DNA of 64,000 bases from Raja brachyura (Eukaryota), in contig OY740797.1 of assembly GCA_963514005.1 (NCBI GenBank), forward strand, positions 24,738,001 through 24,802,000. The letters run 5' to 3'. The position numbers and the translations under genes are program-made. Of the stretch, positions 9,201-51,724 are shown piece after piece. The notes below the pieces were generated by a model, which was not told the DNA's origin, did not search any database, and was given only the letters and a program-made list of their open reading frames with translations. Position 1 is the stretch's first letter; every line of letters starts with the position of its first letter.

Positions 9201-10650
9201 ATTTTGTTGAGAAGTGGCCCTTTTTGATTTTTGCCCTGGTTTTGTCTGCCTGCCACTTTTACTTTTCACCTTGCTCCCTATTGCTTCCACCCTCGTTTTA
9301 CACCCACCTGCCTCTATGCTCTTGTACCCATCCCCCTGCCACATTAGTTTAAATCCTCCCCGACAGCACTAGCAAACACTCCCCCAAGGACATTGGTTCC
9401 ATTCCAGCCCAGGTGCAGACCGTCCTGTTTGTACTGGTCCCACCTCCCCCAGAAATGGTTCCAGTGCCCTAAAAATTTGAATCCCTCCCCCTTGCACCAT
9501 TTTTCAAGCCACGTATTCATCTGCAATATCCTCCTACTCTGACTGGCCCGTGGTACTGGTAATAATCCAGAGATTATTACCTTTGAGGTCCTACTTTTAA
9601 GTTTATCTCCTAGCGTCCTACCATCCTGGAGTCTCGTTTGCGGCCGCAGAAATGCCTATCTATTCCCCTGACAATTGAATCCCCTATTATTATTGCCCTT
9701 CCCCTCTTTTCCCCCCCATCATGTGCTGCAGAGCCACCCATGGTGCCATGAACTTGGCTGCTGCTGCATTCCCCTGATGAGCCATCTCCTTCAACATTAT
9801 CCAAAATGGTAAACCTGTTTAGTAGGGAGATGACCGCAGGGGACTCCTGCACTACCTGCCTACTGCTTTGCTGGCTATTGGCCACCCGCTCCCTTTCTGT
9901 CCTCTTACCTTTTACCTGTGGTGTGACCAACTTGCTGTATGGGTTATCCACAACTTTCTCTGCATCGTGGATGCTCCAGTATGAATCCAGCCACAGCTCC
10001 AATCGTCCAATGCGGTCTGCCAGGAGCTGCAGCTGGACACACTTCCTGCAAATGTAGTCACCAGGGACACCGACAATATCCCTGATCTCCCACATGTTGC
10101 AGGCTGAGCAAACCATGGGGCCAATCTCCACTGACATACCTTCCTCCCAAATTACTCTGTATTAAATATATATATTTTTTTAATTTATTCTTTATTAAAC
10201 ACAAAACTTTATCCTTTAAACTTTACTAATAAATACTAATAAATACTGAATCCCTATCTCCCAGAATCCTTAACTCCCAGAATTCTTAACTCCCAGAATC
10301 CTTAAACCTGAAGGCAGAAATGTAAAAATGTAAACCCCGGGTTGCAGCCAATCAGCTGCTTCCTCTGGTCCTCTTCAACCAATCAGAGGCTTCACCAGAT
10401 CCCCTCTCTGGAAGTGAGATGGAACGTTGCAGATGCTGGTCTCACAGCGCAGGTAACTCCACCCTCTCTCTCCAATGGGTCCCCGGGCCTCTGTGAAAAA
10501 CAAGCCCCGCGCTAGATTTATACTCACAGCGCAGGTAGCACCCCCCTCTCTCTCCAACGGCTCCCCGGGCCTCTGAAAAGCAAGCCCCGCGCTAGATTTA
10601 TACTCACAGGTAGCTCCACCCTCTCTCTCCAACGGCTCCCGGGGCCTCTT
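6263..10650 (-). mobile_element. Near full-length CR1/HER1-type LINE: ORF1 (Zn finger + SGNH esterase) and frameshifted ORF2
   Basis: ORF1 CSAC...CRKC, IIGDSIVRG, DGLHL. ORF2 GITETWL, SDHN, SGVPQGSVLGP, FADDTK. Repeated 5'-UTR units at 10440-10650 and a (tagaaaca)n tail. Confidence 0.95.
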
Positions 10651-12888: not shown

Positions 12889-14650
12889 ATTTTATTTATT
12901 TATTTAAAAAAAAAAAATTATTAGAGGTAAATACATCAGTGTACATCCCGTATATATTGTTACAATCATTATACCCCTTAATTTTAAGGCTTTTATAGAA
13001 AAGGAATAGAAACAGAGAAAGTGAAGAAAGTGAAAAGAGTTGTGAGAGTGAAAAAAGCGTGCCAAAGGAAAAGAAAAAAAGAACCCTTGGTCAGAGTTAG
13101 AGAAAGGAGATTAAGAGATAGACCATAGAAAAGAGAGAGAAAAAAGAGAGAAAAGAAAAAAGGAAAAGCTAGTTACTATATTATAAACATCACGCAAAAG
13201 GAATTTACCAACTCGATAGTTTTCCATCCCCCTTTACTAAGACCTGACGCCAGTACCTTTTTGAGGTACTCTTGCACCCTATCCTTTTGGCAAATCTATA
13301 ATTACAGACCACGTCTGATAGAAACAATCTGATTTTCCTGCCAGGCGGAGTCTCATATCTTCCAGATGTAGTGTTTCAAACATAGCTGAAATCCACATAT
13401 TTACTGTTGGTATAGGGGCATTTTCCCAGAATTTTAAGATTAGCTTTTTTCCTATTATTAAGTCATATTCAAATAGATTTTTTTGAAATACATTTAATTC
13501 AGGGCTACCTTATGTTACTCCAAAAATAATCCAATCTGGCTTTGGTGTCAGTTTTATTTTAAATAATTTTGTGATGATTTCAAAGATTTCAATCCAAAAT
13601 TTTTGAATTTTTGTACGAAAGACAAATGAGTGCGCTATAGTAGCTTCTTGAGACTGGCATTTATTGCAAATAGGTGAGACATTGTATTGTATTAATTGCT
13701 TCATCCAGTAAATCTGATGGCATATTGTGATATTCTTGTGTATATTGTTTCAGATAGTCACATATTTGGAAATATTTAAAGTACTGATTGTTTCCCAAAT
13801 TGTATTTTAGTTGTAATTGTTTACTTAATTTAGTTTTTGAATAGTATAATCTGTGTAAGATTTTAAATTGTACTAAAGTGTACTAAATTTTAAATTGTAC
13901 TAAAGTGTGTCTTAAGTTAANNNNNNNNNNNNNNNNNNNNNNNNNNNNNNNNNNNNNNNNNNNNNNNNNNNNNNNNNNNNNNNNNNNNNNNNNNNNNNNN
14001 NNNNNNNNNNNNNNNNNNNNNNNNNNNNNNNNNNNNNNNNNNNNNNNNNNNNNNNNNNNNNNNNNNNNNNNNNNNNNNNNNNNNNNNNNNNNNNNNNNNN
14101 NNNNNNNNNNNNNNNNNNNNNNNNNNNNNNNNNNNNNNNNNNNNNNNNNNNNNNNNNNNNNNNNNNNNNNNNNNNNNNNNNNNNNNNNTGGCATATTGTG
14201 ATATTCTTGTGTATATTGTTTCAAATAGTCACATATTTGGAAATATTTAAAATACTGATTGTTTCCCAAATTGTATTTTAGTTGTAATTGTTTAAATGGT
14301 AATAATGTTCCCGTTTCATACAAATCTCCCAAGGTTTTTAATACCAGCTCATTCCCATTGTATAAATTCCTTTATCTATAATTGAGGGTTTAAATGAAGG
14401 GTTTTTAACGATAGGGGATAGGACAGATACATTTCTTAATTTTAAGTTGTATTTTATTTGATTCCAAATTCTAATTGTACTATGTATAATTGGATTTTTG
14501 TTGTAATTTGTATTATTCAACGTCATTGGTGAAAGAAGGATTGCTCCAATATTACAAGGGGAGCAGTCCTCTTTCTCCATAATAATCCACTCCGGTTGCT
14601 GGGGAGAGTTATCCAGCAATTGAATAATATTCCTGATATTTACAGACCAA
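12889..14650 (-). mobile_element. 5'-truncated L1-type LINE 3' fragment spanning an assembly gap
   Basis: ORF2 C-terminal peptides (SPICNKC...HSFV; homologous to 62500-63660). T-rich (poly-A) tail at 12889. Confidence 0.88.
13921..14188. other. Assembly gap
   Basis: Run of N. Confidence 1.
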
Positions 14651-19295: not shown

Positions 19296-19301
19296 TTTAT
19301 T
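19296..19301 (-). promoter_or_regulatory. Candidate polyadenylation signal of the receptor gene
   Basis: AATAAA on the minus strand about 190 nt after the stop codon. Confidence 0.45.
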
Positions 19302-19490: not shown

Positions 19491-19613
19491 CTATTTAAAA
19501 ATCCTGATTCCTGCATACTCTGTTTCATTGTTCTTCGCCGTTCTTGGATGTTTCAGAGAAGTGGTGAGATCCAGAGTTGCATAGGTCAGTTTATTTTCTG
19601 ACACTTCTTGGAC
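19491..19613 (-). CDS. Exon 7: terminal cytoplasmic exon with ITIM + ITSM
   Basis: Acceptor ttatttttcgatag|, phase 0. Reads VQEVSENKLTYATLDLTTSLKHPRTAKNNETEYAGIRIFK-TAG; LTYATL matches the ITIM and TEYAGI the ITSM (TxYxxI/V) consensus. Confidence 0.88.
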   Translation of the reverse strand, partial: VQEVSENKLTYATLDLTTSLKHPRTAKNNETEYAGIRIFK

Positions 19614-19709
19614 CTATCGAAAAATAATCAGAGATCATGAGCTGCTGATTCCCCTTTATGGGCGACGTACAGGAATTTTCGCTGCAGTACACTTTCGCTT
19701 TTACCTTAC

Positions 19710-19796
19710 CTGGCCATAGGTAATTTGTTCTTCGTGACGTCTGTTTTTTGCAGTTTTCTTCTGTCCGCTGAAATTCATATCTGCGTACGTCGGATA
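19710..19796 (-). CDS. Exon 6: cytoplasmic exon with two Tyr motifs
   Basis: Acceptor ttccctcag|, donor CAG|gtaagg, 87 nt, phase 0-0. Reads YPTYADMNFSGQKKTAKNRRHEEQITYGQ. Confidence 0.82.
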
Positions 19797-20458
19797 CTGA
19801 GGGAACATTTATTTGAAAGGAAATAAACTCCGCATTTACATAGAACTGCGAAGCCGAGCAAACGCAAAACAAGCGCGTGGAAGCTGGGTCTGCACGACCA
19901 GTCATTCCATTGCTATATATGGTTACTTCCCTATGATGAGATTACTAAAAATGTAAACGGAAACAACTCGTATCTAATTGGTTTGGCTAACTATTAGCCA
20001 AATCATGAAACCAATGGGCAGAAAACTGACCGGAAGTTTGTTGGATAATGACTTCGAGGACAATATATAGTTGACGCGCTTTCTGGGCTCAGACATGTTA
20101 GCAGATTTTCCGTAATATATCAGAACGAGCTGCCCCGCAAAAAATATGACGTGTGAATTTTGAATTGGAACAGGATATGATGCTTCACGGTGAATAATCC
20201 GCCCGACACCGTCTGTGTGTAGAGTAGACATAAACTGTTCAGGATAACTCGAAGGATACGCAAATGCACGTTGCTGACGGTCATGGACTATATCATAAGA
20301 ATACGGAAGGATAAGGGAAATTGCAAACGAGGCACATAGAGAGTTACACGAAAAGTGGACCCATCCTGTTGTCCCATCAACGTGATTATAATTACGGACG
20401 TCCATTTGCAGAACATGATCCAACAGGTTATATCCTGTTATACCATCAAAAAAATTAC

Positions 20459-20502
20459 CTGTTTTTCGAAGTGGTGGGTTCTGGCCTCAATATTTTCTGG
20501 TG
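20459..20502 (-). CDS. Exon 5: first cytoplasmic exon
   Basis: Acceptor ttattatgttctctactag|, donor CAG|gtaatt, 44 nt, phase 1-0, exactly bridging exon 4 to exon 6. Reads APENIEARTHHFEKQ. Confidence 0.72.
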
Positions 20503-21174
20503 CTAGTAGAGAACATAATAAAACGACCAAATTTTATCATCAACGTATCACAACCTGCCTGCCGATAGTCAGTTAATAATCGAATTGGACCAGATTCGTT
20601 CGGCTGCAGAAATTGACCATTGCGGTCATGCTATTCTTGTTATTTAAACACATCCTCTCCTTGTTAGTCCTAATGCTAAGGAAAAGCACACGGAAAAGTT
20701 GCAAACCTATTGTTTGCTTCCGCTTTCCTGTGATAACTGCCCCTATTTAAACAACCCGACCTTTGAAGCATTTCACCTAGTGTTCAAAAGCGCCGTCTTT
20801 TAGAACAAACGAAATCAATGATTTTGCAACCAACGGCTTAAACGGTTAAAACGTTGTTTCCCACAGAATACTGCGGCCGGAGAAAAGGCCCTGTGGTTTA
20901 AATCGTTATCTCAGCACTCCTCGTTAATCTTTCAACTGAACATTGCTATTTTCGGAAAAAACACGAAATGTTGTAGTAATTCAGCGGGTTAGGCAGCATC
21001 TACGGGGGGGGGGGGGGGGGGGCATCGATAGCCGAAGTTCCGGGTCGGGACCCTTCTTCACATGTGACTCAACCCCAAAAGTCCCCTATCCATTGTCTCC
21101 CCAGATGCTGCCAAACCGCCGAGTTACTCCAGCACTGTATCGCAAATTTCGTACAAGGATCATTCGCTTCTTAC

Positions 21175-21285
21175 CTTCAGTACTGTGTAATTTGCACCGC
21201 CTGGCATAAAATACCAACGCTGGAATAATTAACACGCATATGGCAAATCCACCCGCCAGAAAGTAGACGGGTTTAACGCTTGTTC
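21175..21285 (-). CDS. Exon 4: transmembrane exon
   Basis: Acceptor ttttatttcccccttag|, donor GAAG|gtaaga, 111 nt, phase 1-1. Reads GTSVKPVYFLAGGFAICVLIIPALVFYARRCKLHSTE: an uncharged ~22-aa hydrophobic segment followed by a basic stop-transfer RR. Not in the ORF track. Confidence 0.88.
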
Positions 21286-24200
21286 CTAAGGGGGAAATAA
21301 AAGCGGAATATTATAACTTTTCAGAAGTTATCTTCATGAAATAATCAGAGTACACGAACCAGGGATTGCAGAATGGGTTCCACAATTTCACTTCATTACG
21401 CTGTATTCCATCTGCCACTATTTACCTACTCTCCCAAACTGTCCAAGTCCTTCAGCAAACTCCCTGCTTCCTCAGCACTATCTGCCCTGCACCTACCTTA
21501 GTGTCATCTGAAAAATGGCGAAAAAAACATCAATTTCATCATCCAGAGCATTAACATATAATGTAAAATGCAGCAGACACAACATCGACCCCTGCAGAAC
21601 ACCAATAGTCGACCGCAACAAACCACAAAAGGCCCCTTTATTGACACAATTTGCCTTCTGCCAGTCAGCCAATCTTCGATCCGTGCTAATCCCTTGCCTT
21701 TAATGCCTTGCGCTTCTATTTTATTCAGCGGCCTCACGTGTGGCACCTCATCAAAATTCCAATCAAAATTCATCCTTAATACGGATTCTAAAAAATTTAA
21801 ATGTTTATCAGTAGCCTATAAAGATTAGGCTTTGTTTTACTCTTCATACTGTCTGATTGTTGAGTATCTCAGACATTTCCCTTTGTTTCTCCTTCACACG
21901 TTATGTCCACATACTATTTTGACATGTACGGATGCGCTTGTCGCCCCCTCTCCCCGTTTCGCCGTGTCACTGGTGACAGGGAGGAAACCTCCAGCTCTCC
22001 GGCAATCAAAATATAAACATTAAGGAAACGAATTACCTGGAGTGAAAACATCAAAAATGAATTCCACTGGGCATAATAAAAACACGTGCACGATCTGTAA
22101 TGTACTTTGCATTCGGTAAAATAGATTATTCTACTGGTTTACGGGCCTGTGTCTTCTTAATGTTGGGGTCATTGATATCGTAAAGGCTGTTGAACTGAAA
22201 TATCGACCGACTGTTAACATTTTGGAATGATAGCTGCAGTCGTTATGGTTCACTTATCAACACAAGATCAGAATTATTCTGAGTTGTGATATCTCTCTCA
22301 GAGGGTTTGGTGAACCAATCATTGATTCACCGTCGATGTGCTGCACGTGCACTATCCCAGCTTTCAAAATGGCTTGAACAATATAGACGCAAGTCACGTT
22401 ATATCACCCCGAGAAAGTGACACTCTGGATCCACCCCAGGCACATCTTCGCAGTTAGTAAATCTGCTATTTCACATCTGCAGAGACCCTGGATCAATTCT
22501 GACCTCCAGTGTTCTCTGGAGTTTTTATATTCCCACGGTGATCACGTTACTTCCGTAGGATACTCTAACATCTTCCCAAATCTCAACGACTTTCAGGATT
22601 GTTGGTTGATTGGCCACTATAGGTAGTCATTAAGTTTGAAGAAGGGTCTCGATCCGAAACGTCACCCATTCTTTCTCTCCAAAGACGTTGCCTGTCCCGT
22701 CGAGCTACTCCAGTAGTTTGTGTCTATCATCGTCATTAATGTGATGGTCATTTTGTGGGGAGTTGATGGAACTGTGCAGGGAATGAAATTGGGCGACGGT
22801 AGGTTTTGTACAATTAGGGTAGCTGATCCCAAGCACCTATTTTCTTCTTTTAACTACATAAAACATGTACACTAGAACCGTTGGTTTTGGGTCTGGAGAA
22901 AAGTATACAGTCTCCGTCGCTGCGATTGACGTTATTATTCATAATAGTGGGGAAGTGGAAAATTTACATTTAACATTTGTACCTTATGAAAACCCAAACG
23001 ACGAAGAGACAACCAAGATTAAGCGATTGAGTTTATCAAACAAAAGAACAAAATATACCATGGGGAGTACCTGTCGAGAGAATTTCATAATGGTAACTAA
23101 AGTTAAAACAGGTACATAGCTAATGGGAATCTTATTATTTATCAAGAAAGAACTAACATGTAAAAGCAAGGAGGTTGTGCCATTGCGTTAATTCCCATTA
23201 CAAGCCCGCGTACTCGCACAGTTATCTCCAGCGCATTTCCTCCGACTCAGCCAGGTGAACGGGCTCCATTACCTAATTACCTAATCAAGAATCCATTACA
23301 TAATCAAGAATCTATCTATCTCTGCCTATAAAATATCCACTGACGGCCACCACGGGCTTCTGTAGCAAATTATTCTACAGATTCACCGATAATCTGTATG
23401 TAATCTTAAGGTATTTTAAGTGCTACACAATTAGTAATGCGTTCGAAAAAATCCCGTTAATTCAATTGGTAACCTGCAACTCTCAGACCAATAAAACAAT
23501 GAGTGCCATTTAGCAAGTCCGAGCCAGAGAAACATTCAGTGGGATGATTTAACAGGCATTGGGTTCCTTGAGAAGGGCAATCACCACCTTGGGCTCAACA
23601 GCGACACATCTAGTAGAGCTGCTGTTTCACAGCACCAGAGATACAGGTTAAATTCTAACTTGGGCGCTGGGCCCTGTCTATGTGGAGTTTGCACACTCTC
23701 TCTGTAATCATGTGGGGTTCCTCATGGTGCTCCAGGTTTCTCCCACATCTCAAAGACGTGTGGATTTGTGCGGCAGCAATCGAGACTGCAGGATAGGTTA
23801 TAGGGGATTTGGGTAGAATTGGGCCATTCGGCCATCCGCCATTCCATCGTGGCTGATCTTTCGCTCTCTCCTGACCCCACCGTCCTGCCTTCTCCCCATA
23901 ACCTCTGACACCTGTACTAATCAAGAATCTATCTATCTCTGCCTAAAAAAATCCACTGACGGCTTCCACGGCCTTCTTTTAATTATTAAATTCTGAGGCT
24001 ATGCTCTCTAGTCCTAGACTCTCCCGCTAATGGAATCATCCTCTCCACATGCACTCTTTCCAAGCCTTTCACTATTCTGTATGTTTCAACGAGGTCCCGC
24101 CTCATTCTTCTAAACTTCAGCGAATACAGGCCTACTGCCGCCAAACGCTCATCATAATGTAACCTAGTGATTCCTGGGATAATTCTTGTAAACATCTTCC

Positions 24201-24534
24201 ATGCTACTACCCTCTAATTTCAAGGAATCATGCTCTGGAGTTTGAGCGACCATCGGATCGCTTGACTGCTGTTCTCCCCCTACTTTCTTTATCGCAAAGG
24301 CATTATTTCACCACAAACCATCTTCACGGTCCAGTATCCGCGAACACCTATTTGCCTTCTCACCGTACCGTCACATACAGCAATAGATATTATAATGTTT
24401 GCCCTTTCAAAACTTGCATTAACCACCCAGGGGCCGCGTACTCCCGCCAGGGTTCATCTTTTCAGATTGCATTTACTACAGTATATTTGGTGAGGTCTAT
24501 TTTAGTTGGAAACACCAAATGCAAAACGAGAGCT

Positions 24535-24862
24535 GCGGCAGCACAGTGGCGTGGCTGTAGAGCTGCTATATCACAGCGCGAGAGACACAGGTTTGATCCT
24601 AACCATGAATGATGTCCGTACGGAATGTGTACGTTCTCAATGTGACTGCGTTGGTGTCCTTCGGGTGATACGGTATCCTCCCACATCCCACAAAGAATGG
24701 ATGTGCAGGCGTGTAGGCTAATTGGCAAATGTAAGTTGTCGCCAGTGTGCAGGGAGTGAATGAAAAAGTATTCTAATAGAGAACTATATACCGGTGATCG
24801 ATGATCAACGTGGACTTGGTGTGCTGAAGGCTCCGCTTCCACGCGGTATCTCTAAAACTAAA
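24535..24862 (+). mobile_element. tRNA-headed SINE (HE1/V-SINE-like)
   Basis: GCGGCAGCACAGTGGCG...GTAGAGCTGCT head, B-box-like GGTTTGATCC, conserved core, (ctaaaa)n tail. Related copies at ~23600-23770 (+), 30230-30550 (-), 33860-34170 (-), 46440-46740 (-). Confidence 0.7.
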
Positions 24863-26236
24863 ACAGTCAATTTGAAGATGTTAACTTAATTTCCAATTGT
24901 ATCTAAAATCGTAATCCATCTTATATTTTCAATTTATTTTCTTTACTTCTCGTGCTACCTCAACGAAGTCGCAAAACAGCGTTATGGAATCTCTCCCAAC
25001 TGCATTGACTAAAACCTTAAACCTGAGCAATGAATTCACCTTCAGAAAATTGGATGAAAACTGGCAGTTTCTATGAATGAAAATAATGGGATAAATTCCA
25101 GATGCTGGGAGCATAAAATGAGCAAAACATAGAAATGTCTGGGAGCACAGACCAGATCAGACAGTTCAAAGGAAAGCCCATCACCCGGAATTATCGCTAC
25201 TCCGTATTGTGTGTATGACCGTTCGCACATTTTCTTATTTTTCCTTTATGTTCAATTTCCTCTTCTGTTTGAATCCCATCACAGATCAGCAACGATTAAA
25301 AAATAAATTATCTGAGTTAATGACCGCGTATGCTATTAAATTACCCTTGGCCTCTGTCCTCGGGTTTATTGGTTTGGTCAACCTGTTTTCAAGTTGGTTT
25401 ACCATCCATCTCCAACGGTACAGCAATAAGACTGCAAATTATTTTACATTTAAATTATGCACGGGAATAGCTTCATAAGTATTTGCTGAGACGACTCGTT
25501 TGTGTTCTGTGTGCGCTCCTGGTCATCCTAGTATACGCAGCATATCATTATGTTGGAAAAGGTGCAGAAATGATTCACCAAGGTATTACCTGGAATCCAT
25601 GGCTTGAGTTATCCGGTGATGCTGAGCAGGTTGTGACCTCTTCCCATGAGGCATAGGAGGTTTACCTAATTCAAGTATATAAAATTATGATAGGGGTAGA
25701 GAAAGTGAATGCTTACAGTCGTTTTCTCCACGGTTATGGATTCTCAACAGGGAAGGTTAAGAGGGGCCCAAGGGGCAATTTATTTTTGAGGAAGTTACAG
25801 AAGCGTGTGCAATTGTGATTTTCAAAGGAATTTTGGATAGGTATTTGGATAGGAAGGATTTAGAGGAGAAATGGTCAAATGCGTAGAGATGGGCCTGGGC
25901 CAGATGGCAATTTGCTTGACGTGGACGGGGCGGGCTGAAGGGCCTTGCTTCCATGCTGCAGAGCTCTATATGATCGGAGATAAACAGTCAGTTTCAGCGT
26001 CCGCTATTGTACAAACATGCAAACACAACTGTTATCTTTGCGCGATATCTCTTACTAACCAGTATCTAATTTCGTAGACTGTCATACCTTTCCATTTCAA
26101 CAAAGGCATGCCCACAATCTCCATTCAAATACTTAAAAATGGTCTGGCGTAAGATTTGGGTGGGAATTCATGAAATGCCTTGACATAAAAACCAGTGATA
26201 TATCTCAGGACGTTATTGAAGGCATAAACCTCATAC

Positions 26237-26518
26237 CGATTCCAGGAAATCTGTGAGTTTCATTGGTCGGAAACAGGAGGGTGACGTGAGACACGTGGCA
26301 ACTATAAACAGATCGGCTATCCACTGCATGCAGGAAGCTGGAAGCAAGGTATAATCCCTCGTTGGTCCGTATTTTAGTGGTATTTAATCCAGAAGTGATT
26401 TCGTGGTCGTCTTTATACCAGGTAAGTTCACAGTCCTCTGGGAAAAACGGAGCAGTTGTACAGTTTAGGGCCAGGGAAGGATTGTTCATCTGTGTAATCT
26501 TCAAAGGCGTCGGTGACA
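26237..26518 (-). CDS. Exon 3: C1-set Ig domain
   Basis: Acceptor ttggttgcag|, donor ATCG|gtatga, 282 nt, phase 1-1. C1 motifs LNCTTAPFFPE, LTWYK, NEGLYLASS.L, YSCHVSHVTL. Confidence 0.93.
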
Positions 26519-28899
26519 CTGCAACCAATTTAAGACAAAGGAGTTAGTACCCCTATATGTTTATTTAGAAGACAATATAATCGCTTTCGAAATGGATAAT
26601 ACCATACATTCTTGGAAGTTCCTTTAATAGTAAAGTATTTTAACCATGTTGTTGGAAATATATAGTACAGTAAACCGCCGTTATAATGTAGTTGGACATG
26701 ACCACTATATCTGAGCGCTATGTACACCTCTCACTGTCCGCAATGCCTTCATTCTGTCCATGCGACGAATGCAGAAACTATCGGCATGGACGGCTGAGTC
26801 TGGGGAAGAGGGGTGAGCCAAGTCTCTGTGAAATAGAGCACACAACATTCGGTCATCTCTGATAAAGCTATTTTGCCGCTGGGAATTCCTTATCATGGGC
26901 GATTCCCTTTTTTTTTAATGCTAAACAGTTTTATTTATTATCACATTTACCGAGCCACATTGAAACACTTTGTGTTGTGTGTTATTCAATCAGCGAAAAT
27001 ACTATACACGATTACAATTAAACCGTCCGCATTGTACAGATTCAGGATTACCGGATAACGTTTAGTTCAAGATAAAGTCGAGTGAAGTCCGATAAAAATA
27101 TAGTTTGAGAATCTCCAGTGAGATAGATGGTAGGACTTGATCTCTCTCTAGTTGGTGATAGGATGGCTTTGGGTACCTGCTGGGAACGCAACGTTGCTAC
27201 ACCGGACAAAGCAGAGTTCAAGGTGGTACAATCAAACGGAATATTGTGTTAATTAAATCCTAAAGGGAGTTATTTTTGTATTATATGTAAAACATGCTGC
27301 AAGAGAGAAGCAGCTTTATGTATGCGTGAAAGTCTTGTGAGGGACAACGCGCAGAATAATTTGAACGTTTGACATATGGTATAGTATCTAATGTTACCCG
27401 GAGAATAAATAAAGTTTACAGTGAAATGGCAGTTTTAGGAGCAACAATAAACAATACTGGGAATCTGTGGGAAGATCCGATCAAGTTTGAAAATGTTCTG
27501 CAGAGATGTATTGAAGGTGAACTTTTAAAAATAGGGACTTTTGGTCCCTTCTGTATGGACCAGAAATAACTTTGATAAGGTTGCACACGGTACGTTGCTC
27601 TGGAACATTAGATCCCATGTGGTCCACGGAGAGCTCGCCACTGGATAGAAAAATGGCTTCATGTAAGGAAGCAAAGGGTGATGGTGGAATGTTGTATTTT
27701 GCGGACTGAATTCCGGGGAAGGCGAGAGGGGAACACTTACCAAGAACCTAAGGGACATCAGTTTCATGCAGATGCTGGTGGGTATACGGAATGAGGTGCC
27801 AGATGAGGTCGCGGAGGGAGGTTCAATTTTTACCAGACATTTGGACGGATACATTAGGGAAAAGGTTTAGAGAAGGATAAAGGCCAATTACGGTGTGACA
27901 TCTTGGTGAGCATTGGCCAATTGGGCTGAAATTTCTATTTTCGTGCTCGAGGACTCTGTGATTCTATTCAATTATAGCGTTTATTTTTACAAATCGTGCC
28001 AACCCAATGCCAAACATATTCAGGAAAATATATAAAAGTATGACCAATAATCAATAGATCAACAATAGATCAAGAGTAATAGACAATAATACGTAGAGTT
28101 CCGAGCTAGGAATGATTTCGTATAGAAATTGGTTGATTAAGCAAATCACAATCTTTCGGATCGATTAGAAGAGGGTTATCTACCCAAGTGGACTAATGAT
28201 GGACAATTGATAAATTAATACATTACATCTCACATAAGCTATTGTAAAAAGGTGAGGATAATTATAGCTATCACGCCAATCAACGTGATTGCTTCCCTCC
28301 AATGATGTAATATCGGGGTGAAGTCAAAGCGTCCTCTTATTATCCGAACGTATAAACTCCGTACAGACCAGCATCTGTAGCTAGGAACGAACGCGGTCCT
28401 CTGGCGCTATAAGCGCTGTATGCTGCAACTCTACCACTGCGCCACCGTGCAGAGGCTCAAATATTGGATTGTTATTAGGTGGTACAGATATAATATAATA
28501 GCATTAAAATACTACTCCATATGTAGCCATTAATGACTCAACGGGTGAAGCAGAGAAATGGCTTCCCACGGAATATGTGGAAAATGACACCCAAAGGAAA
28601 CTGTAACTGTTCCCACAAACTGAACGTGCAACTAGGATCCATACAAATGAAACATTAGAATCAATTAACCGCAGCAAACATGGGATGAGTGAGAGCGAGC
28701 AGGACAGATTTTGGGGGAAGTAGCATGCGTGATGTAATGGCTGATCCAATTGTTTTTTGACATCAGCTTGCTACATCTATAAGGGAAAATAACACAGAGG
28801 ATAGAAGAAATCACTGGAAATAATCCATGATGTTCTAACAGCAGGTACACAAAAGGCCAGATTGGAACTGGCAAATGCCGTGAAGCTGTCACATTGCTC

Positions 28900-29900
28900 A
28901 CTTCATCCTCGATAACTATCGGAACAGTGGCACCTCGAGGTTGCGTGCAAACTCTATACCTATGGATGTGTACTCGGAACAGTTCCAACTCAATCTTTAA
29001 ATTTGCAGACTACACCACCGTTGCTGAACTAATTACAGGTAATGATGTGTCAAAGTAGAAATGGAAGATCCAGCATATGATCTAATGGTGCTAGAACAAC
29101 AATCTGGCTCTCAATGTCAGTAAGATTGCCGATTGTTGACTTTAGAAGAGGAAGGACCAGGATTCATCAACCTGTCTTCATCGACGGGTCGGTAGTGGAG
29201 AGCGTCAAAAACTTCAAGTTCCCTGGCATGCATATTTCTAAAGAACTGTCCAGAACTCCGCACATTCGTGCAATCATATGAAAGCCCTCCAATGCTTCTA
29301 ATTCTTCAGAAGATTGAGGAGATTCGGTATGTTGCCATTGAGTCATAGTCATAATTTCCTGCTTGACACCATATTTAATCGAAAGCGCTCTTAAACCGTT
29401 GCAGTATATGGTAGAGAGCGTATTAACCGGTTGCATCGCGGCCTGGTTCAGTAACTCGAACGCCCAGGAATGGAATTACAAAAAGCGGAGGAGACTGCCC
29501 GGTCCATCAGGTGTTCCGACCTTCCAACCACCGAAGAGATCTATAGGGGAAGCAGCCTCAAAAATGCAACCAACATCAAGCCCCACAAAACCTTGCCACA
29601 CTGTAATTACACTCCTGCCATCGAGAAGGAATACGCGTTTGAAAACCATGACCTTCATGATCAGAAAGAGCTTTTCCCCAACAACCATCAGGCTATTAGA
29701 CACTAAAAACACCAACTAAACCGAATACAAACCGTCTTTATTGTACTCGGAACTTTGGAGCATTTGTTTTTGTTTTGCACTAATTTAGTTTTCTATTGAA
29801 CTTATTTTGGTTTGTTTGTTGAGTACTGTGCTACAGACCCGCTATGCTGCTGCGACTAAGAACTTAATTGTTATTTTTCTGTACGTTGGCAATTAACTGT
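28900..29900 (+). mobile_element. Rex1/Babar LINE 3' fragment (intron 2)
   Basis: FKFADYTTV RT remnant; ESVLTGCIAAWF; SFSPTTIRLL C-terminus. Confidence 0.8.
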
Positions 29901-30568
29901 TTGGGATAGATTCCAACACTCAGATGTCTGCAGCAAAAATATGTAACTCACGTGAATCATAATAGACGAAAATGTTGAAGCAAACATTCAATCACTCACC
30001 TAGAGGGATGCTTGGGTCAATTTGAACCTCAACACCTTCAACTCTCTCTATTTCTTAAATGGTCGACCTCGCTATTTGTTTCTTCCAGTGCTTGGATATC
30101 CTCACTCAACCACATCATTTTGCACCTGTCATATACTTATTTAATCGCTAACCCTGACCATAACCTCCTTAATTCGCCCTGTATCAAGCACGCCCTCCGT
30201 ACTGTGGTGATTGTGTTCCTTTTCAGTGTTTGAGTTTTAGAGCTACAACGCGGAGACAGGCCTTTCGGCCCATCGATCCCCGCATCGAGTCCGCGCCGAC
30301 CAGCGATCCCAGCATATTAACACTATCCGACACACACTAGGGATATTTTTTACATTTACCAAGCCAATTTACAAACATACCTCGACGTCTTTGGGCTGTG
30401 GGAGGAAACAGAAGATCCCGGAGAGAACCCGCTCGGTCATGGGTAGAACGTACAAATTCCGTACAGACAACAGCCGTAGTCAGGATCGAACGCGGGTCTC
30501 CGACGCTGCAAGCGCTGCAAGGCAGCAACTTTACCGCTGCGCCACCATGCCGAGTTTTCTTAGTGGTT

Positions 30569-30687
30569 GAGTGTGTGTGTGCATGTGTGTGTGTGTGTGG
30601 GAGGGGGGGGGGGGAGGGGGGGGGGGAGGGGGGGGGGGGGGGAGGGGGGGGGGGGGAGGGGGGGGGGGAGGGGGGGGAGGGGGGGGG
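30569..30687 (+). repeat. (TG)n microsatellite followed by a G-rich (GnA) tract
   Basis: Seen directly in the sequence. Confidence 0.9.
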
Positions 30688-32733
30688 TTAATAGAATGAA
30701 ATGTTTAGCATTTACAGCATTTACTCAACATGAAATAGGACCACATCTCCAACGGCAAATGTTCGTCACCATCATGCTCCCGTCCACGTAACAAAAGCAT
30801 TATTTCTACATCGGTGGGTAATTCATTGATCTCCATCCCAAACTGATCTATGCAAGTGCTCTCACCAGAGAATTTCCGCGGATCTTTCACAAATAGTGAT
30901 CGGAAATGTGCTGGAAGCAGAGCCAATCAGGACGGTGAAAAATAAATGAAATAAAAACCTGGTGGAAAGCAATTTAAGCGTTCCAAGAAAGAACGGGTGC
31001 ATGGGACTGACAATTTCGGTTTCCAGGTGGCGAGTACATAATTGATCTCCACTGTGACGCAAACTTCTTTTCCTCGGTTATTGCAATTTAATGTGGTGAA
31101 ATGTTTAGTTTACAAGGTCTTGATTCGCCTACTCTGGGTAAAAGGCGATGCATATACTAGATTTATTCCTGTCATGATGAGATACGCCTCAATAAGATCA
31201 CCACTTACCCTCCTGCGCTGCAAGGAATAACGTCCTAGCCTGCTCAGGCTCTCCCCGTTGCTCAGACCCTCGCGTCGTGGCAACATCCTCGTAAATCTGC
31301 TCTATATCCTTTCCAGCTTAACTACATCATGCCTAGTTGCAGAGGCAGATAAAATAGGGGCATCTTAGATATTTTAAAATAGGTAAATGCAGGGAATGGA
31401 AGGATATGTCTCGCAAAGAGCGGATATTAATTTAGCTTGGCACCATATTCGGCACTGAAATTGTGGGCTGAAGGGTCTATTCCTGTTCTATGTTTAGTTG
31501 TTGAATTCTATTTTGAGCAGTTATAAGTCCGAAATTGATGGGATGCTTTAGGTATTTGTCGTGTTCGCAATACATGTCACGGTACTTAAACTGGTCAAGG
31601 TATAGTAGCGTGTCTGTGTGTATTCAGCAGTTGTTGAAGTGGGTTTGAAATGGCGCGCTGTGCGGAGGGAAGAACGTACTCAGTTGGGTGAAGCTTTCTG
31701 GCATATTTCCACCCAGAAGTCGAGTATAACGCTGACGTGTAATTATCATTCACACCGAAGCTTCTGTTCCCCTACTCGACGCTCTGCCGAGTTCCAATGA
31801 AACTCGACGTAAAATGACGGATAACGTTTTGATTAATATTCTCAATTTGCAATTTAATCATTTGAATTCTGGTACTACTTTTATCTCCCTTGTTTACATA
31901 TTTTGTGACTTGTTGCATTATTCTCAGATTTCCCTCCGTTTATAATTTAATGGGTTTTTTTGTCTTCCATCCATACTAATACGCCACCACTCACCCTACA
32001 TGTTATTCCTTGTTATACCTCTGAATGACTTTAACAATTTTTACCATGAACATTTCTTACCTCCGCTATAACGTTCTCGGCAAAAACTAATTTCTGTAGT
32101 CGCAGATGTGTTGTGACTCGTATTTTATCATTCATTTTCTTTTAAACTATGAATTCCTAAAATCACGGTAGAATAGTCGTACACAAGATTACGGTTAGAA
32201 TATATCACGCTCACTATTCATCAAATGTTTCTTCTAACAACATACGTTTTGCTAACATTTACTTGTTGGACTAGAAATAACTACATAAATGGTCAAGTAT
32301 GGTTATTCTTCAACAAAGAGCCAATTTGTGATCTCCCAAGAATGCTCCATCATCTGGATAGCACAGGTCTAGACTCGAACGCAATGTTTTTTTGACTAAA
32401 CGACTGCCGCTACAATACTCGCTAACATATGACGGTTTACCCTTTATTGACTACCATCTGCAATCTTAATCTATACTCTTTCGCAGGATGCAGTTGAGGG
32501 GCCGCCAAGAAAATTAACACTACACATAAAAATGATAACTAAATGGCATGAAATTAAAGAATGATTGTCTAAAGATCTCATGGCCCATCAATCACGAAAA
32601 AACCAATTACTTAAATCGTTAGAGCAAAACTTCTAGTACAGACTGAGAAAGGGTCCGTTTATTGCTGCTTTATATCTCTGTAGCACACCATATTTCTTTT
32701 TGTATTGTGATTCGAAACATCAAGTAGACTCAC

Positions 32734-33057
32734 CGTGTACAATAAGCCTCGTGCCATTGCTTTTGGAACGCTTTCCTTTCCCGCCTCTCACAGTGCAATA
32801 ATAGATCCCGGAGTCACGGATGCTCACGTCTAACAGATGTAATTCGGCAGATCCCTTCTGGACATTGTTCATGGTCATCCTCCTGTTTGCGGTGGGATCC
32901 AAAGTCTCTTCTTGACCGCCTCTCTTCCAGTATACATCCACCAGTGCGTTCTGACCGAAGATTGGGAAAGTACAGTATAGGGATACATTTTCACCTTTGA
33001 CTTTCGTTACCTTATCTGGAATCTGACGAACCCTGAACGAAGAGGCCCCAACAGTAA
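32734..33057 (-). CDS. Exon 2: V-set Ig domain with germline-encoded J-like G strand (VJ type), NKp30/SIRP-like
   Basis: Acceptor tttttaattctgacag|, donor CACG|gtgagt, 324 nt, phase 1-1. Canonical V residues: GENVSLYC, W (VYWKR), SAELHL, DSGIYYC, and terminal NGTRLIVH. Confidence 0.95.
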
Positions 33058-33227
33058 CTGTCAGAATTAAAAACAAACGTTAAACATGTGAAATGACAAT
33101 GAACGGATTGATAAAAATCCAAATAGCTGAAATAGCTCGACCGAAAACTAAGAGTTGTCCATCTTATACTTTTCGGGGATTGACCTTTCCCCTGTTATTT
33201 TCGTTTAATAGAGAAAAATATATTAAC

Positions 33228-33288
33228 CTGGAAATATATTAATCATGCGCAGGATCGAGAGACACAGCAGCACGGCAAACATAAACAT
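33228..33288 (-). CDS. Exon 1 (leader peptide) of VJ-C1-TM-ITIM Ig-superfamily receptor gene
   Basis: ATG at 33288 reads MFMFAVLLCLSILRMINIFP (hydrophobic signal-like), then a phase-1 donor CCAG|gttaat. A 170-nt intron separates it from the V exon, the classic leader-intron-V layout. Confidence 0.85.
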
Positions 33289-35274: not shown

Positions 35275-38200
35275 TATGAGGCCCAGGGCCGTTTGCTGTT
35301 CTGGAGTCTGATAGTCTTCCAGACGTCCACATCTGCGCCAGGTGTGTCGAGGTTGGGCTCCGAAGGGACCGTATTAGGAACCTGGAGCTGCAGCTCGATG
35401 ACCTCAATCTGGTCAGGGAGAGTGAAGAGGTCATAGAGAGAAGTTACAGAGAGGTGGTCACTCCAAGACCATGGAAGGCAGACAAGTGGGTCACGATTAG
35501 GAGGGGTAAAGGGGCAGAGGCAAGGATTAGAGAGTACCCCGGTGGCTGTACATCTTGGCAATATATACTCCTGTTTGAGTACTGTTGGGGGAGACAGCCT
35601 ACCTAGGGGTAGCGACAGCGGCCGGGCCTCCGGCACAGAGACCGGCCCTGTTGCTCAGAAGGGTAGGGAAAAGAAGAGGAGGGCATTAGTAATAGGGAAC
35701 ACCACAGTTAGGGGGTCAGATAGGTGATTCTGCGGACGCAGTCAGGAGACCCGGATGGTAGTTTGCCTCCCTGGTGCCAGGGTCTGGGATGTGTCTGAAC
35801 ATGTCCAAGATATCCTGAAAGGAGAGGGAGAGAAGCCTAAGGTCGTGGCACATATAGGTACCAATGACATAGGTAGAAAAAGAGAGGGGGTCCTGAAAGG
35901 GGAATTTAGGGAGTTTTGAGGATAGTTAAGGAGAAGGACTGCAAAGGTAACACTCAGGATTACTGCCTGTGCCACGCAACAGTGAGAGTAGGAATGGAGC
36001 GAGGTGGAGGATAAATGTGTAGTTGAAGGACTGGTGGAGGGCATGGATTCAAGCTTCTGGATCATTGGGACCTCTTTTAGGGAAGGTGTGACCTGTACAA
36101 AAAGGACAGGTTGCACTTGAACCAGAGGAGGACCAATATCCTGGCGGGGAGATTTGCAAAGGCTACGGGGAAGACTTTAAACTAGAACAGTTGGGGGGAG
36201 GGACCCAAATAGAGAAAGCTAGTAGACAGTGTGTGAGGCAGGAGGCAGAGAAGAGAAGCACTCAGACCCAACATGTAGGGGAGAAAGAAGAAAAATATAA
36301 TAAACAGAGAATAAGAGGTGGTGGGTTTCTTAAATGTGTGAGCAGAGAGACAGAGGGGTGCAAAATGAGGGTAGAAGCAATTGGTAACAAGGTGAAAAGT
36401 AAAAGTGGCAGGCAGACAAATCCAGGGCAAAAATCAAAAAGGGCCACTTTTCAACACAATTGAATAAGGGGTAAAAGTGTTGTAAAACAAGCCTGAAGGC
36501 TTTATGTCTCAAAGCAAGGAGTATTCGTAATAAGGTGGATGAGTTGAACATGCAGATAGTTATTAATGAATATGATATAGTTGGGATCACGGAGACATGG
36601 CTCCAGGGTGAGCAAGGCTGGGAGCTGAACATCCAGGGATATTCCATATTCAGGAGGGATAGACAGAAAGGAAAAGGAGCTGGAGTAGCATTGCTGGTTA
36701 GAGAGGAGATTAGCGCAATAGAAAGGAAGGACATTAGCTTGGAGGATGTGGAATTGATATGGGTAGAGCTGCGAAACACTAAGGGGCTGGAAACGCTAGT
36801 GGGAGTTGTGTACAGGCCACCTAACAGTAATAGTGTAGTTGGGGATGGCATGAAACAGAAAATTAGAAATGCGAGCAACAAAGGTAAAACAGTTATAATG
36901 GGTGACTTCAATCTACATATAGATTGGGTGAATCAAATTGGCAGGGGTGCTGAGGAAGAGGATTTCTTGGAATGTATGCGGGATAGCTTTCAAAACCAAC
37001 ATGTAGAGGAACCAACGAGAGAGTAGGCTATTCTAGACTGGGTATTGAGTAATGAGGAAGAGTTAGTTAACAGTCTTGTTGTGCGTGGCCCCTTGGGCAA
37101 GAGTGACCATAATATGGTTGAGTTCTTCATTAGGATGGAGAGTGACATAATTAATTCTTAAATAAGGGTTATGAACTTAAAGAAAGGTAACTTTGAGGGT
37201 ATGAGACATGAATTGGCCAAGATGGACTGGCAATTGATTCTTAAAGGGTTGACAGCGGATAGGCAATGGAAGGCATTTAAAGACTGCATGGATGAACTCC
37301 AAAAATTGTTCATCCCAGTTTGGCAAAAGAATAAATCAGGGAACGTAGTACATCTGTGGATAACAAGGGAAAGCAGGGGTAGTATCAAAACAAAAGATGA
37401 AGCATACAAATTAGCCAGAAAAAGCAGCCTACAAGAGGACTGAGAGAAATTCAGAGTCCAGCAGAGGAGGACAAAGTGATTAATTAGGAAAGGAAAAATA
37501 GATTATGAAAGAAAACTGGCCGGGAATGTAAAAACTGACTGCAAAAGTTTTTATAGATATGTGAAGAGAAAAAGATTAGTTAAAACAAATGTAGGTCCCT
37601 TGCAGTCAGAAACAGGTGAATTGATCATGGGGAACAAGGACATGGCAGACTAATTGAATAACTACTTTGGTTCTGTCTTCACTAAGGAAGACATAAATAA
37701 TCTGCCAGAAATAGCAGGGGACCGGGAGTCAAATGAGATGGAACTGAGTGAAATCCACATTAGCCGGGAAGTGGTGTTAGATAAATTGAATGGATTAAAG
37801 GCTGATAAATCCCCAGGGCCAGAAAGGCTGCATCCCAGAATATTTAAGGCAGTAGCCCCAGAAATAGTGGATGCATTAGTGATAATTTTTCAAAACTCTT
37901 TAGAATCTGGAGTTGTTCCTGAGGATTGGAGGGTAGCTAATGTAACCCCACTTTTTAAAAAGGAAAGGAGAGAGAAAACGAGGAATTACAGACCAGATAG
38001 TCTAACATTGGTAGTGGGGAAACTGCTAGAATCGATTATTAAAGGTGGAATAGCTGCAGAATTGGAAAGTGGTGAAATCATTGGACAAAGTCAGCATTGA
38101 TTTATGAAAGGTAAATCATGTCTGACGAATCTTATAGAATTTTTCCAGGAAGTAACTACTAGTTACATCCTCGAAAAAGATAAGGGAGAACCAGTGGATA

Positions 38201-49998: not shown

Positions 49999-51093
49999 AT
50001 GAAAAGAACTCCCCCACCCAAAGAGAAAAAATCTGTGCTGAAAAAAGAGGTAGGCCCAGTTGAAGCCTCGACCTCGAGTTTGACTGGCTCTCTGGAGGAT
50101 ATCCCAAGGAAGAAATCTGAAATGGAGGATCTGAAAGCCACCATGAAGGGTGAGTTTAAAAATATGAAGAAAGAATATAAGGAAGAATTTAAGCTGCTCA
50201 GAGGTGACATTGAAATATTTAAAGAACAAGTTAAAGAGGAGTTGAAAAATGAAGTTGTAACCACAGTAAAAATGATGATGGATGAATGGAAGATAAAAGC
50301 AGATGCTGATCTAAAACAACAGATGCATGAAGTTAATCAGAAAGTTGGTGGTTTGGAACTCTCAGTTGATCGCAAGTTGGAACCTATTATGAGAACACTT
50401 GATCAACAACACGAAGCAATAAAGGAACTGACCAATATTGCGGATTCAAGTGCTAAGGCGAATGAGAAACTTCCCTCCGAGAACAAGCGTTTAACAGATT
50501 TATTGAATAAAATAACTGAGAAATGTATTGACTTGGAGGGAAGGCAACGACGTAAGAACTTGCGTATCGTGGGTGTGCGTGAAGGCAAGGAGGGAGCTCA
50601 AGACACCAGAGAGTTTGCTGCAAATCTTCTGAAGAATGTCTTGAATCTGGATCAAGCACCCCTACTTGGCCGAGCGCACAGAGCACTGAGACAACGCCCA
50701 AAGACGGGTTCGCCACCAAGACAACTGATTGTGAAAGTGGTTTACGATCATGTTTTGGAAGACATGATGAAGATAATAATTCGCAAACAGAATCTGTTTT
50801 ATGATGGTGATAAGATCAGCATATTCAGAGATTATCCTGCGGAAGTTGCCAGGAGAAGAGCCCTTTTTACTGAAACAAGGCACATCCTCAGAAATATAAA
50901 GGGCGTGAGATATGGCCTGATGTATCCTGCCACACTGCGAGTGAGCTACGACAACAAAGAGCACCACTTCACTAAACATACCGAAGCTCTGGAGTTCGCA
51001 CGTAAAATCGAGAAGGAGTTGGATGAGGAAGAAGAAGAAGAAGCAGAGGGAACACAGGGAGAAGACGATGATGAAGAAGAGGAGGAAGAATAA
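49999..51093 (+). CDS. L1 ORF1 protein (coiled coil, RRM, CTD; acidic tail), intact 364 aa
   Basis: DLEGRQRRKNLRIVGVREG, RAHR, ISIFRDY, YGLMYPATLRV. Confidence 0.9.
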   Translation: MKRTPPPKEKKSVLKKEVGPVEASTSSLTGSLEDIPRKKSEMEDLKATMKGEFKNMKKEYKEEFKLLRGDIEIFKEQVKEELKNEVVTTVKMMMDEWKIKADADLKQQMHEVNQKVGGLELSVDRKLEPIMRTLDQQHEAIKELTNIADSSAKANEKLPSENKRLTDLLNKITEKCIDLEGRQRRKNLRIVGVREGKEGAQDTREFAANLLKNVLNLDQAPLLGRAHRALRQRPKTGSPPRQLIVKVVYDHVLEDMMKIIIRKQNLFYDGDKISIFRDYPAEVARRRALFTETRHILRNIKGVRYGLMYPATLRVSYDNKEHHFTKHTEALEFARKIEKELDEEEEEEAEGTQGEDDDEEEEEE

Positions 51094-51724
51094 CGAACTT
51101 GAATTATACTCAACACTTACCTGATGCCGATCCACATCCAGCATTAAGGAGGAAGAATGATGAACTTGTAAAATTATTGGACTTGGAGAGCTCAATGATT
51201 GTTAATAATAAACTAATATATAATAGTATTAGTTCAGTACTAACCATTATTAATAAATATATGCGATACCTCCTTAAATAACCTAAAACGATAACAGCAA
51301 ATTAAATCAATAAAGTATTAATAAGAATGGAAATGTAATACCCCGCCCCTAAATATATTGCCCTTAAGGCATTTACGGAACTGGAAATACAAACATCTTT
51401 TTTTTCCCAACGGAAGTCCGTAGTTTAACAGCCACGCTAGTGTGGCTTACACTAACACCACTTTATGTAGCTTTAGACACTCTTTCTTTCCTGCACCTTT
51501 CCAATAATATTACTAACTATTTATTTTCTCTTTTTTATATATTTTTAAAAATATATTATATGTGGAATTATATTATTTTACTTTTGAATGGAATTATACC
51601 GTAGGCTGGAGAGGATATGTATGTCAAATAATGTTATTAGTATTAGTTGATCATAAATTAGGGTACGAAATTGGGATATATGTGCTGAGACATCTACCTC
51701 ATTATAATCCACCATAACATCCTA

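Follow-up and report, generated by a model that had tools for sequence, protein, structure and literature searches.

An intact, germline-joined VJ-C1 gene in the skate Raja brachyura very probably encodes an ITIM-tailed membrane receptor of a chondrichthyan family

Genes in which a variable (V) domain and a joining (J)-like strand are joined in the germline and followed by a C1-set constant (C) domain bear on the beginnings of antibodies and T-cell receptors (TCRs), because the C1-set domain and the joined VJ unit are the building blocks of both. Does a 64,000-nt stretch of the genome of the skate Raja brachyura (contig OY740797.1, positions 24,738,001 to 24,802,000; hereafter the window, numbered from its first letter) hold such a gene in complete form, and to which receptors is it related? 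An earlier note, made from the letters of the window, had proposed a hidden gene of this kind on the minus strand, with a TCR-chain-like ectodomain and an inhibitory tail. Our analysis indicates that the gene very probably encodes an intact, germline-joined type I membrane receptor whose tail carries immunoreceptor tyrosine-based inhibitory motifs (ITIMs), and that it represents one subfamily of a VJ-C1 family of cartilaginous fishes.

The coding sequence is divided among seven exons between 33288 and 19491 on the minus strand, which total 1032 nt and join into 343 codons and a stop codon. We checked the frame exon by exon, both by reading the borders and by a mechanical search for exons of the proposed lengths and phases. 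All six introns are of the GT-AG type with pyrimidine-rich acceptors, the twelve splice sites are canonical without exception, the intron phases run 1,1,1,1,0,0, and every exon is open in its phase; none of the four codons split by phase-1 introns (GTT, GTG, GGA, GCA) is a stop. The extent, exon lengths, GT-AG sites, phases and open frame of the 343-residue model in the earlier note were all borne out.

Exon 1 (33288-33228, 61 nt) begins with ATG at 33288 and encodes, in 20 codons plus 1 nt, a hydrophobic leader that makes up most of the signal peptide; its donor is GTTAAT, with the GT at 33227. A 170-nt phase-1 intron splits the leader between this exon and exon 2 (33057-32734, 324 nt; acceptor ...TTCTGACAG, donor GTGAGT), which carries the end of the leader and the whole V-set domain. 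The C1-set domain is encoded by exon 3 (26518-26237, 282 nt; acceptor ...GGTTGCAG, donor GTATGA), and exon 4 (21285-21175, 111 nt; acceptor ...CCCCCTTAG, donor GTAAGA) supplies the stalk, the transmembrane (TM) segment and the residues RRCK. The remaining three exons are cytoplasmic. Exon 5 (20502-20459, 44 nt; acceptor ...TTCTCTACTAG, donor GTAATT) encodes (A)PENIEARTHHFEKQ and moves the phase from 1 to 0; exon 6 (19796-19710, 87 nt; acceptor ...TTCCCTCAG, donor GTAAGG) and exon 7 (19613-19491, 123 nt; acceptor ...TTTTCGATAG) carry two tyrosine motifs each, and the latter ends with TAG at 19493-19491. A pattern scan found a candidate polyadenylation signal, AATAAA, at 19296..19301 on the minus strand, about 190 nt past the stop codon.

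We ran a profile of 13 public relatives (alignment A1) over all six-frame open stretches of the window. It matched the V domain (E = 1.3e-49), the C1 domain (8e-40), the TM segment (0.15), exon 6 (1e-3) and exon 7 (1.4e-6), and all five matches lay on the minus strand and were colinear with the order of the profile. The match of exon 4 was weak, yet it fell at the expected colinear profile positions 230-263; exons 6 and 7 fell at 281-307 and 311-346, respectively. In the same six frames, the profile revealed no further immunoglobulin (Ig)-like exon, including a second C1 exon. With phmmer, the V and C1 exons matched proteins of the ray genus Mobula at 136 bits and 95-104 bits, respectively, exon 4 matched the TM region of these proteins, and exon 7 matched batoid tails at 17-29 bits.

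The two shortest exons stood apart: exon 1 is below the length detectable with the family profile, and exon 5 was invisible to both BLASTP and the family hidden Markov model. For exon 5, we made a gap-free BLOSUM comparison of every stop-free 15-mer from the intron in which it lies with the 15-residue family segment that links the TM exon to the first tyrosine motif (family counterparts are AAENDENLSRYLENQ, GTEISEDIPGQFEEQ and similar). The exon 5 peptide ranked top of these 617 15-mers, with a score of 19.2 vs 6.4 for the runner-up, and it is bounded precisely by an AG and a GT that give the required phase. The claim of a complete gene, with a leader, V(J), C1, TM segment and tail in this order, thus has homology behind its exons, including the 44-nt exon 5.

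The product of exon 2 matched the Pfam V-set domain (5e-13) and carries Cys28, Cys87, Trp43 in strand C, and the motif DSGIYYC. Its J-like G strand is part of the V exon itself, which ends KSNGTRLIVH. The J consensus is FGxGTx(L/V)xV, and the set of Ig superfamily proteins with a joined VJ comprises CD79, NITR, SIRP, CD8 and NKp30 (PMC11599192). KSNGTRLIV agrees with this consensus at four of the six fixed positions, the first Gly being replaced by Ser, and the family consensus NGNGTxLIV agrees at five of six. On neither strand of the 64 kb did we find a heptamer-spacer-nonamer resembling a recombination signal sequence (RSS). Because V and the J-like strand are contiguous in one exon and RSS-like sites are absent, the gene is germline-joined and cannot rearrange, and we rejected a rearranging Ig or TCR gene as a candidate. 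The prediction therefore held that the gene does not rearrange and that a true C1-set exon comes after an exon containing both V and the J-like strand.

AlphaFold2, run with the family alignment, modeled the exon 2 product with a mean predicted local distance difference test (pLDDT) score of 88.5, and in this model the G strand appears interrupted at S-N-G, as a J bulge would predict. A Foldseek search with the V model placed NKp30 first (3noi, E = 6.7e-9; 26-29% identity in three entries), with the highest identities in the list; the shark single-domain antibody V domain VNAR, CD79b, lambda V and TCR V followed within one order of magnitude. We also compared a V-only profile (A4) with solved structures. 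The best score was that of shark VNAR (43.5 bits), followed by CD79b (37.5 bits) and TCR-alpha (37.3 bits), with PD-L1 at 36 bits and four NKp30 entries at 35-37 bits across the complete V domain with its G strand. SIRP was absent from the best 60 solved matches of this profile. A single-sequence search of the PDB with the V exon gave weak and mixed matches. Because VNAR, CD79b, TCR-alpha and NKp30 scored alike, the V domain, as judged from these profiles, is a member of the known joined-VJ set without a clear nearest neighbor. The proposed TCR-chain-like character of the ectodomain did not survive this comparison; profiles of the V domain favored no one of the four, and profiles of the V-C1 unit likewise scored Ig, UrIg2 and SIRP-alpha about equally.

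The first place of NKp30 in the structural search raises the idea that the gene is a member or a close offshoot of the shark NCR3 (NKp30) family that has an added C1 exon and an inhibitory tail. The G strand of NKp30 appears to resemble both the family strand GNGTxLIV and SNGTRLIV of the window gene, and family isoforms that lack the C1 exon are NKp30-like, with a V domain, a stalk and a TM segment. Moreover, sharks have been reported to possess several NCR3 genes (accessions cited in PMC12227049). However, the scores of VNAR, CD79b and TCR-alpha equal or exceed those of NKp30, and mammalian NKp30 lacks a C1 domain and combines a basic TM residue with a short tail. The NKp30/NCR3 layout, in which a V domain without any C domain is followed by a stalk, a TM segment containing a basic residue and a short tail, was rejected for the window gene, which has a C1 exon, an uncharged TM segment and a long ITIM tail, so that the V domain alone resembles NKp30. 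We regard an NCR3 origin as improbable.

For the C domain, Hatherley et al. gave three features of a true C1-set: a BC loop with (F/Y)(F/Y/H)P, a Cys and a Trp separated by 13 residues, and xVxH past the F-strand Cys (PMC2785349). By direct reading, exon 3 has all three: its BC loop opens with FFP, exactly 13 residues separate the strand-B Cys from the strand-C Trp (TTAPFFPEDCELT), and it contains YSCHVSH. Pfam agreed, with a C1-set score of 4e-12 for exon 3 vs 3e-5 for C2-set_2 (CD80-type) and 2e-3 for the butyrophilin-type C domain. The best PDB matches of the C1 exon were Ig C-lambda, UrIg2 (1.4e-10), MR1 and the beta2 domain of major histocompatibility complex class II. Membership in the B7/butyrophilin group, which has a CD80-like C domain and neither a J strand nor an ITIM tail, was rejected; C1-set outscored both alternative C types, and a J-like strand and ITIMs are present.

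Exon 4 encodes a short stalk without a cysteine, a TM segment without a charged residue (PVYFLAGGFAICVLIIPALVFYA) and the basic stop-transfer sequence RRCK. The cytoplasmic tail of about 90 residues contains four tyrosine motifs: two ITIMs, one immunoreceptor tyrosine-based switch motif (ITSM) and one YxxM. The first, PTYADM in exon 6 (Tyr codon 19787-19785), is the YxxM motif and a non-canonical ITIM. The second, ITYGQ|V (Tyr codon 19718-19716), is a canonical ITIM that spans the junction of exons 6 and 7, with V as the first codon of exon 7. Exon 7 contributes LTYATL (Tyr codon 19583-19581), also a canonical ITIM, and TEYAGI (Tyr codon 19517-19515), the ITSM; all four codons are on the minus strand. 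In terms of motifs, the combination of an uncharged TM segment, two canonical ITIMs and an ITSM typifies an inhibitory receptor. The inhibitory-type tail that had been claimed is thus present as ITYGQV, LTYATL and TEYAGI.

The tail brings in SIRP-alpha. The motifs of the human SIRP-alpha tail are ITYADL, TEYASI, LTYADL and SEYASV, and the four-tyrosine tail of the skate family (YADx..., LTYAxL, TEYAxI) recalls them. Is the gene then a true elasmobranch orthologue of SIRP-alpha, a CD47-binding myeloid 'don't eat me' receptor with one C1 domain instead of two? Many relatives have been named 'tyrosine-protein phosphatase non-receptor type substrate 1-like' automatically by NCBI, and SIRP-alpha (2wng) was the best solved match outside Ig and UrIg proteins (85-111 bits), its V and first C1 domains aligning as a single colinear block (profile 24-215 to chain 3-205, 111 bits). 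SIRPs, too, have V-only variants and paired activating forms (PMC12975943). On the other side, a search of the whole database with the tail of the Mobula homologue alone retrieved batoid relatives and no SIRP, so that the likeness of the tails is one of motifs and not a demonstrated homology. None of our sequence searches retrieved a SIRP from outside Chondrichthyes, including tetrapods and teleosts, and SIRPs are missing from the V profile's best 60, where VNAR, CD79b, TCR-alpha and NKp30 all appear. The V-C1-C1 layout of SIRPs was rejected because the window has a single C1 exon; with RSSs lacking as well, the gene is neither a rearranging gene nor a V-C1-C1 SIRP. We consider orthology to SIRP-alpha unlikely.

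Whole-protein profiles ranked multi-domain Ig chains first, then UrIg2 (1.8e-28, 1.3e-36) and then SIRP-alpha 2wng (3.7e-23, 4.6e-31). UrIg and UrIg2 are published non-rearranging VJ-C1 candidates in elasmobranchs (PMC12227049), and this ranking bears on a further idea, that the skate gene is a relic of a non-rearranging antigen-receptor precursor close to UrIg/UrIg2 or to TCR and Ig light chains, and as such informative on the gene into which the RAG transposon inserted. The split leader and the VJ exon followed by C1 are arranged as in UrIg/UrIg2 (PMC12227049), and UrIg2 was the second-best solved match both of the family profile and of the window C1 exon. Yet the UrIg2 profile score is the sum of three C domains, and UrIg2 is therefore no better per domain than Ig lambda or SIRP-alpha; from these profiles, Ig, UrIg2 and SIRP-alpha appear about equidistant per domain.

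We also used a model of the Mobula hypostoma homologue, the closest full-length one, in which the ectodomain was well predicted and the tail disordered. A Foldseek search with its two domains placed it closest to Ig light chains, returning only light chains of antigen-binding fragments (Fabs), at about 20% identity and about 9 A root-mean-square deviation. Because the PDB is rich in Fabs and the matches are this distant, they indicate a V-C1 unit and nothing more. UrIg and UrIg2 carry from 3 to 11 C domains and are not known to bear an ITIM tail, and membership in their group (split leader, VJ exon and at least three C1-type domains) was rejected on the single C domain of the window gene. A precursor relic in this sense is highly improbable. 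The suggestion in the earlier note that the gene models the pre-RAG ancestor is unproven; the same argument has already been made for SIRP-alpha (PMC2785349), and UrIg/UrIg2 are stronger candidates (PMC12227049).

How widely is the gene shared? When 1.84 billion representative proteins were searched by HMMER with the V exon, 94 matches fell below 1e-10. The single-V matches that we examined were about 220-490 residues long, and all had the order leader-V-C1-TM-tail. We looked up the taxa of 20 HMMER matches and made two further searches, one with the Mobula homologue and one with the family profile; relatives of the same architecture were found exclusively in Chondrichthyes. The batoids were represented by Mobula birostris, M. 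hypostoma, Hemitrygon akajei and Amblyraja radiata; the sharks by Scyliorhinus canicula, S. torazame, Heterodontus francisci, Heptranchias perlo, Cetorhinus maximus, Carcharodon carcharias, Chiloscyllium plagiosum, C. punctatum and Mustelus asterias; and the chimaeras by Callorhinchus milii. Public predicted relatives include XP_072135199, XP_067905922 and XP_007902825.

Besides the SIRP-alpha-like name cited above, the automatic names of the relatives are 'tapasin-related protein-like', 'natural cytotoxicity triggering receptor 3 ligand 1-like', 'immunoglobulin lambda-1 light chain-like', 'CD276 antigen homolog', 'H-2 class I...-like' and 'uncharacterized'. Long-tailed members of the family keep SYADL.., LTYAxLD and EYAxIKI, and short-tailed members have a basic residue at the TM border. 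In several species there are predicted isoforms without the C1 exon, which leaves a V-TM-ITIM layout (P0004, P0009, P0006 and P0158 vs P0003, P0151 and P0155). In the protein collections searched, we found neither the protein of the window gene nor any skate protein of its subfamily, and the gene may therefore be unannotated. These observations fit the earlier guess that its annotation, if any, would be no more than SIRP-like, and the supposed cartilaginous-fish origin was likewise confirmed. The gene itself is real and complete; it belongs to a large family whose members are already found in public annotations across Chondrichthyes. A dedicated description of the VJ-C1 family was not found in the searchable literature, and some members may figure in the 2021 work on shark NCR3.

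We built maximum-likelihood trees of the V and C1 domains from family members, without an outgroup. In the V tree, the window gene was sister to a Mobula/Hemitrygon clade (ultrafast bootstrap 99; Shimodaira-Hasegawa-like approximate likelihood ratio test [SH-aLRT] 98), and this group was nested in a 14-row subfamily with shark members (99/97). The C1 tree was concordant, with SH-aLRT values of 89 for the sister grouping and 94, and the subfamily comprised 14-16 rows across both trees. The topology follows the species tree, batoids first and then sharks, and we therefore take the gene to be the skate representative of an elasmobranch-wide subfamily and not a lineage-specific oddity. Far from being unique, the window gene is thus one member of an old, unnamed multigene VJ-C1 family that occurs in sharks, rays and chimaeras.

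By analogy with known receptors, the V domain would bind a ligand through loops resembling complementarity-determining regions (CDRs), and Src-family kinases would phosphorylate the ITIM and ITSM tyrosines. The phosphotyrosines may then recruit phosphatases of the SHP-1/SHP-2 type, which would damp activation of the leukocyte carrying the receptor. This working mode would be that of SIRP-alpha within a paired family of activating and inhibitory receptors (PMC12975943). The short-tailed relatives with a charged TM segment point to such a paired system.

Several points weigh against an intact, functioning receptor, and they raise the alternative of an unexpressed or decaying duplicate in a birth-and-death cluster of receptor genes, which has stayed intact by chance after its function was lost. 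We infer the expression, ligand, phosphatase recruitment and cell type of the receptor, the ligand and the signaling from motifs. No RNA run containing the stretch was found, and the six runs retrieved consist of DNA contigs. Such contigs from two related organisms are 2-3% divergent from the window, with the V exon no better conserved than the introns. The three best-supported differences in the V exon are all non-synonymous: T88S (32793), I79F (32821) and Q66P (32859), of which T88S opens the CDR3-like loop, directly after the second cysteine. The divergence of the V exon fits either fast receptor evolution or relaxed constraint and is weak evidence. The window copy is degenerate in its first tyrosine motif and at the initial Gly of the GxG bulge. 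The C1 tree gives it a long branch (0.56), and debris of long interspersed nuclear elements (LINEs) surrounds the gene. Against decay, all seven exons are open and their twelve splice sites canonical, the core residues of both domains and three good tyrosine motifs are kept, and the V domain is predicted to fold with high confidence. A decayed duplicate is accordingly quite improbable, and we retain an intact ITIM-tailed receptor as the most probable reading of the gene.

Could the family be older than the groups with which it was compared? It may have changed little from a germline-joined VJ-C1 ancestor of the early jawed vertebrates, from which duplication of C1 would have produced SIRPs, and loss of C1 the NKp30-type receptors. 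Such an ancestry would account for the mixed affinities, in which the V domain is close to NKp30, VNAR and TCR, the C1 domain to Ig and UrIg2, and the tail to SIRP-alpha. We give this scenario little credence. So far, reports of SIRPs concern mammals, birds and lizards, and the origin of the family has been described as unknown (PMC9652883); SIRP-alpha was proposed in 2009 as 'a link to antigen receptor evolution' on the same grounds (PMC2785349). If the scenario were true, the SIRP family would be rooted at the base of the gnathostomes, and the skate gene would provide a second non-rearranging comparator beside UrIg/UrIg2. If the family is related to SIRPs, checkpoints of 'self' of the SIRP type would date back to the earliest jawed vertebrates. 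Taken singly, the gene is one more member of its family. It shows that an intact VJ-C1 receptor gene with ITIMs has been kept in skates, from a family that is present in sharks, rays and chimaeras and whose names are automatic and inconsistent.

Apart from the receptor gene and one exon of a paralogue, the window consists of LINE and reverse-transcriptase fragments, and it contains no flanking single-copy genes. The paralogue exon belongs to a second gene of the family, convergent (tail to tail) with the first. It is a cytoplasmic exon at 921-1031 on the plus strand that encodes ..DPKLTYTTLNIARLETSIKSRYVEEDMIYAQ (..LTYTTL..MIYAQ) and is followed by GTAAGT, a donor whose relative position matches that of the exon 6 donor. 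A short upstream exon of this gene may lie near 381-412, and its last exon was not found in the LINE debris downstream.

Within intron 2 of the receptor gene, 30204-30605 and 31142-31543 are two very high-copy repeats, with a summed contig depth of 10^4-10^5 in four DNA runs vs about 10 in the flanks. The consensus of the loose ends resembles a tRNA T arm (..GGATCGAACCCGGG..), which suggests a short interspersed nuclear element; ARAGORN found no tRNA in the repeat. A simple repeat rich in GGGGA and GT adjoins it at 30563-30691. Long open frames of the LINE type lie at 49999-55193, 60250-61460 and 36535-38100 on the plus strand and at 6875-10137 on the minus strand. Among them, 51725-54268 is a nearly intact endonuclease/reverse-transcriptase open reading frame of 847 residues, preceded by an ORF1-like frame of 364 residues. 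A run of 268 N at 13921-14188 is an assembly gap or a masked segment.

How, then, does the skate gene compare with the known receptors that share its parts? Ig light chains and TCR chains have the same V-J-C1 order of domains. They differ in that V and J of the skate gene form one exon without an RSS, in that it has its own TM segment and signaling tail, and in that identity is about 20%. UrIg and UrIg2 are specific to elasmobranchs or chondrichthyans, and in them C1-type domains come after a single VJ exon whose leader is split. However, UrIg is a secreted protein with three C domains, the C domains of UrIg2 number 9-11, and neither has been described with an ITIM tail; moreover, both form disulfide-linked dimers, whereas the skate gene lacks a stalk cysteine.

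NKp30 shares a germline-joined V of the VJ type that is the top structural match of the skate V model, and its G strand appears similar; the C1-less isoforms of the relatives also share its layout of V, stalk and TM segment. It differs in lacking C1 and in signaling through a basic TM residue and adaptors rather than ITIMs. SIRP-alpha, by comparison, has two C1 domains where the skate gene has one, and the skate V domain is not specifically SIRP-like. Nevertheless, SIRP-alpha shares an N-terminal V-set domain with a J-like strand, a C1-set domain, a TM segment and several tyrosines of the ITIM type. The likeness extends to the family level. V-only splice variants, paired activating forms and an inhibitory mechanism have been described for SIRPs (PMC12975943), and the C1-less isoforms of the skate gene's relatives parallel the V-only variants. 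For function, the inhibitory mechanism of SIRP-alpha offers the closest analogy (PMC12975943, PMC2785349). Like the SIRP family, the chondrichthyan family thus comprises inhibitory-type members, short-tailed members with a charged TM segment, and V-only forms.

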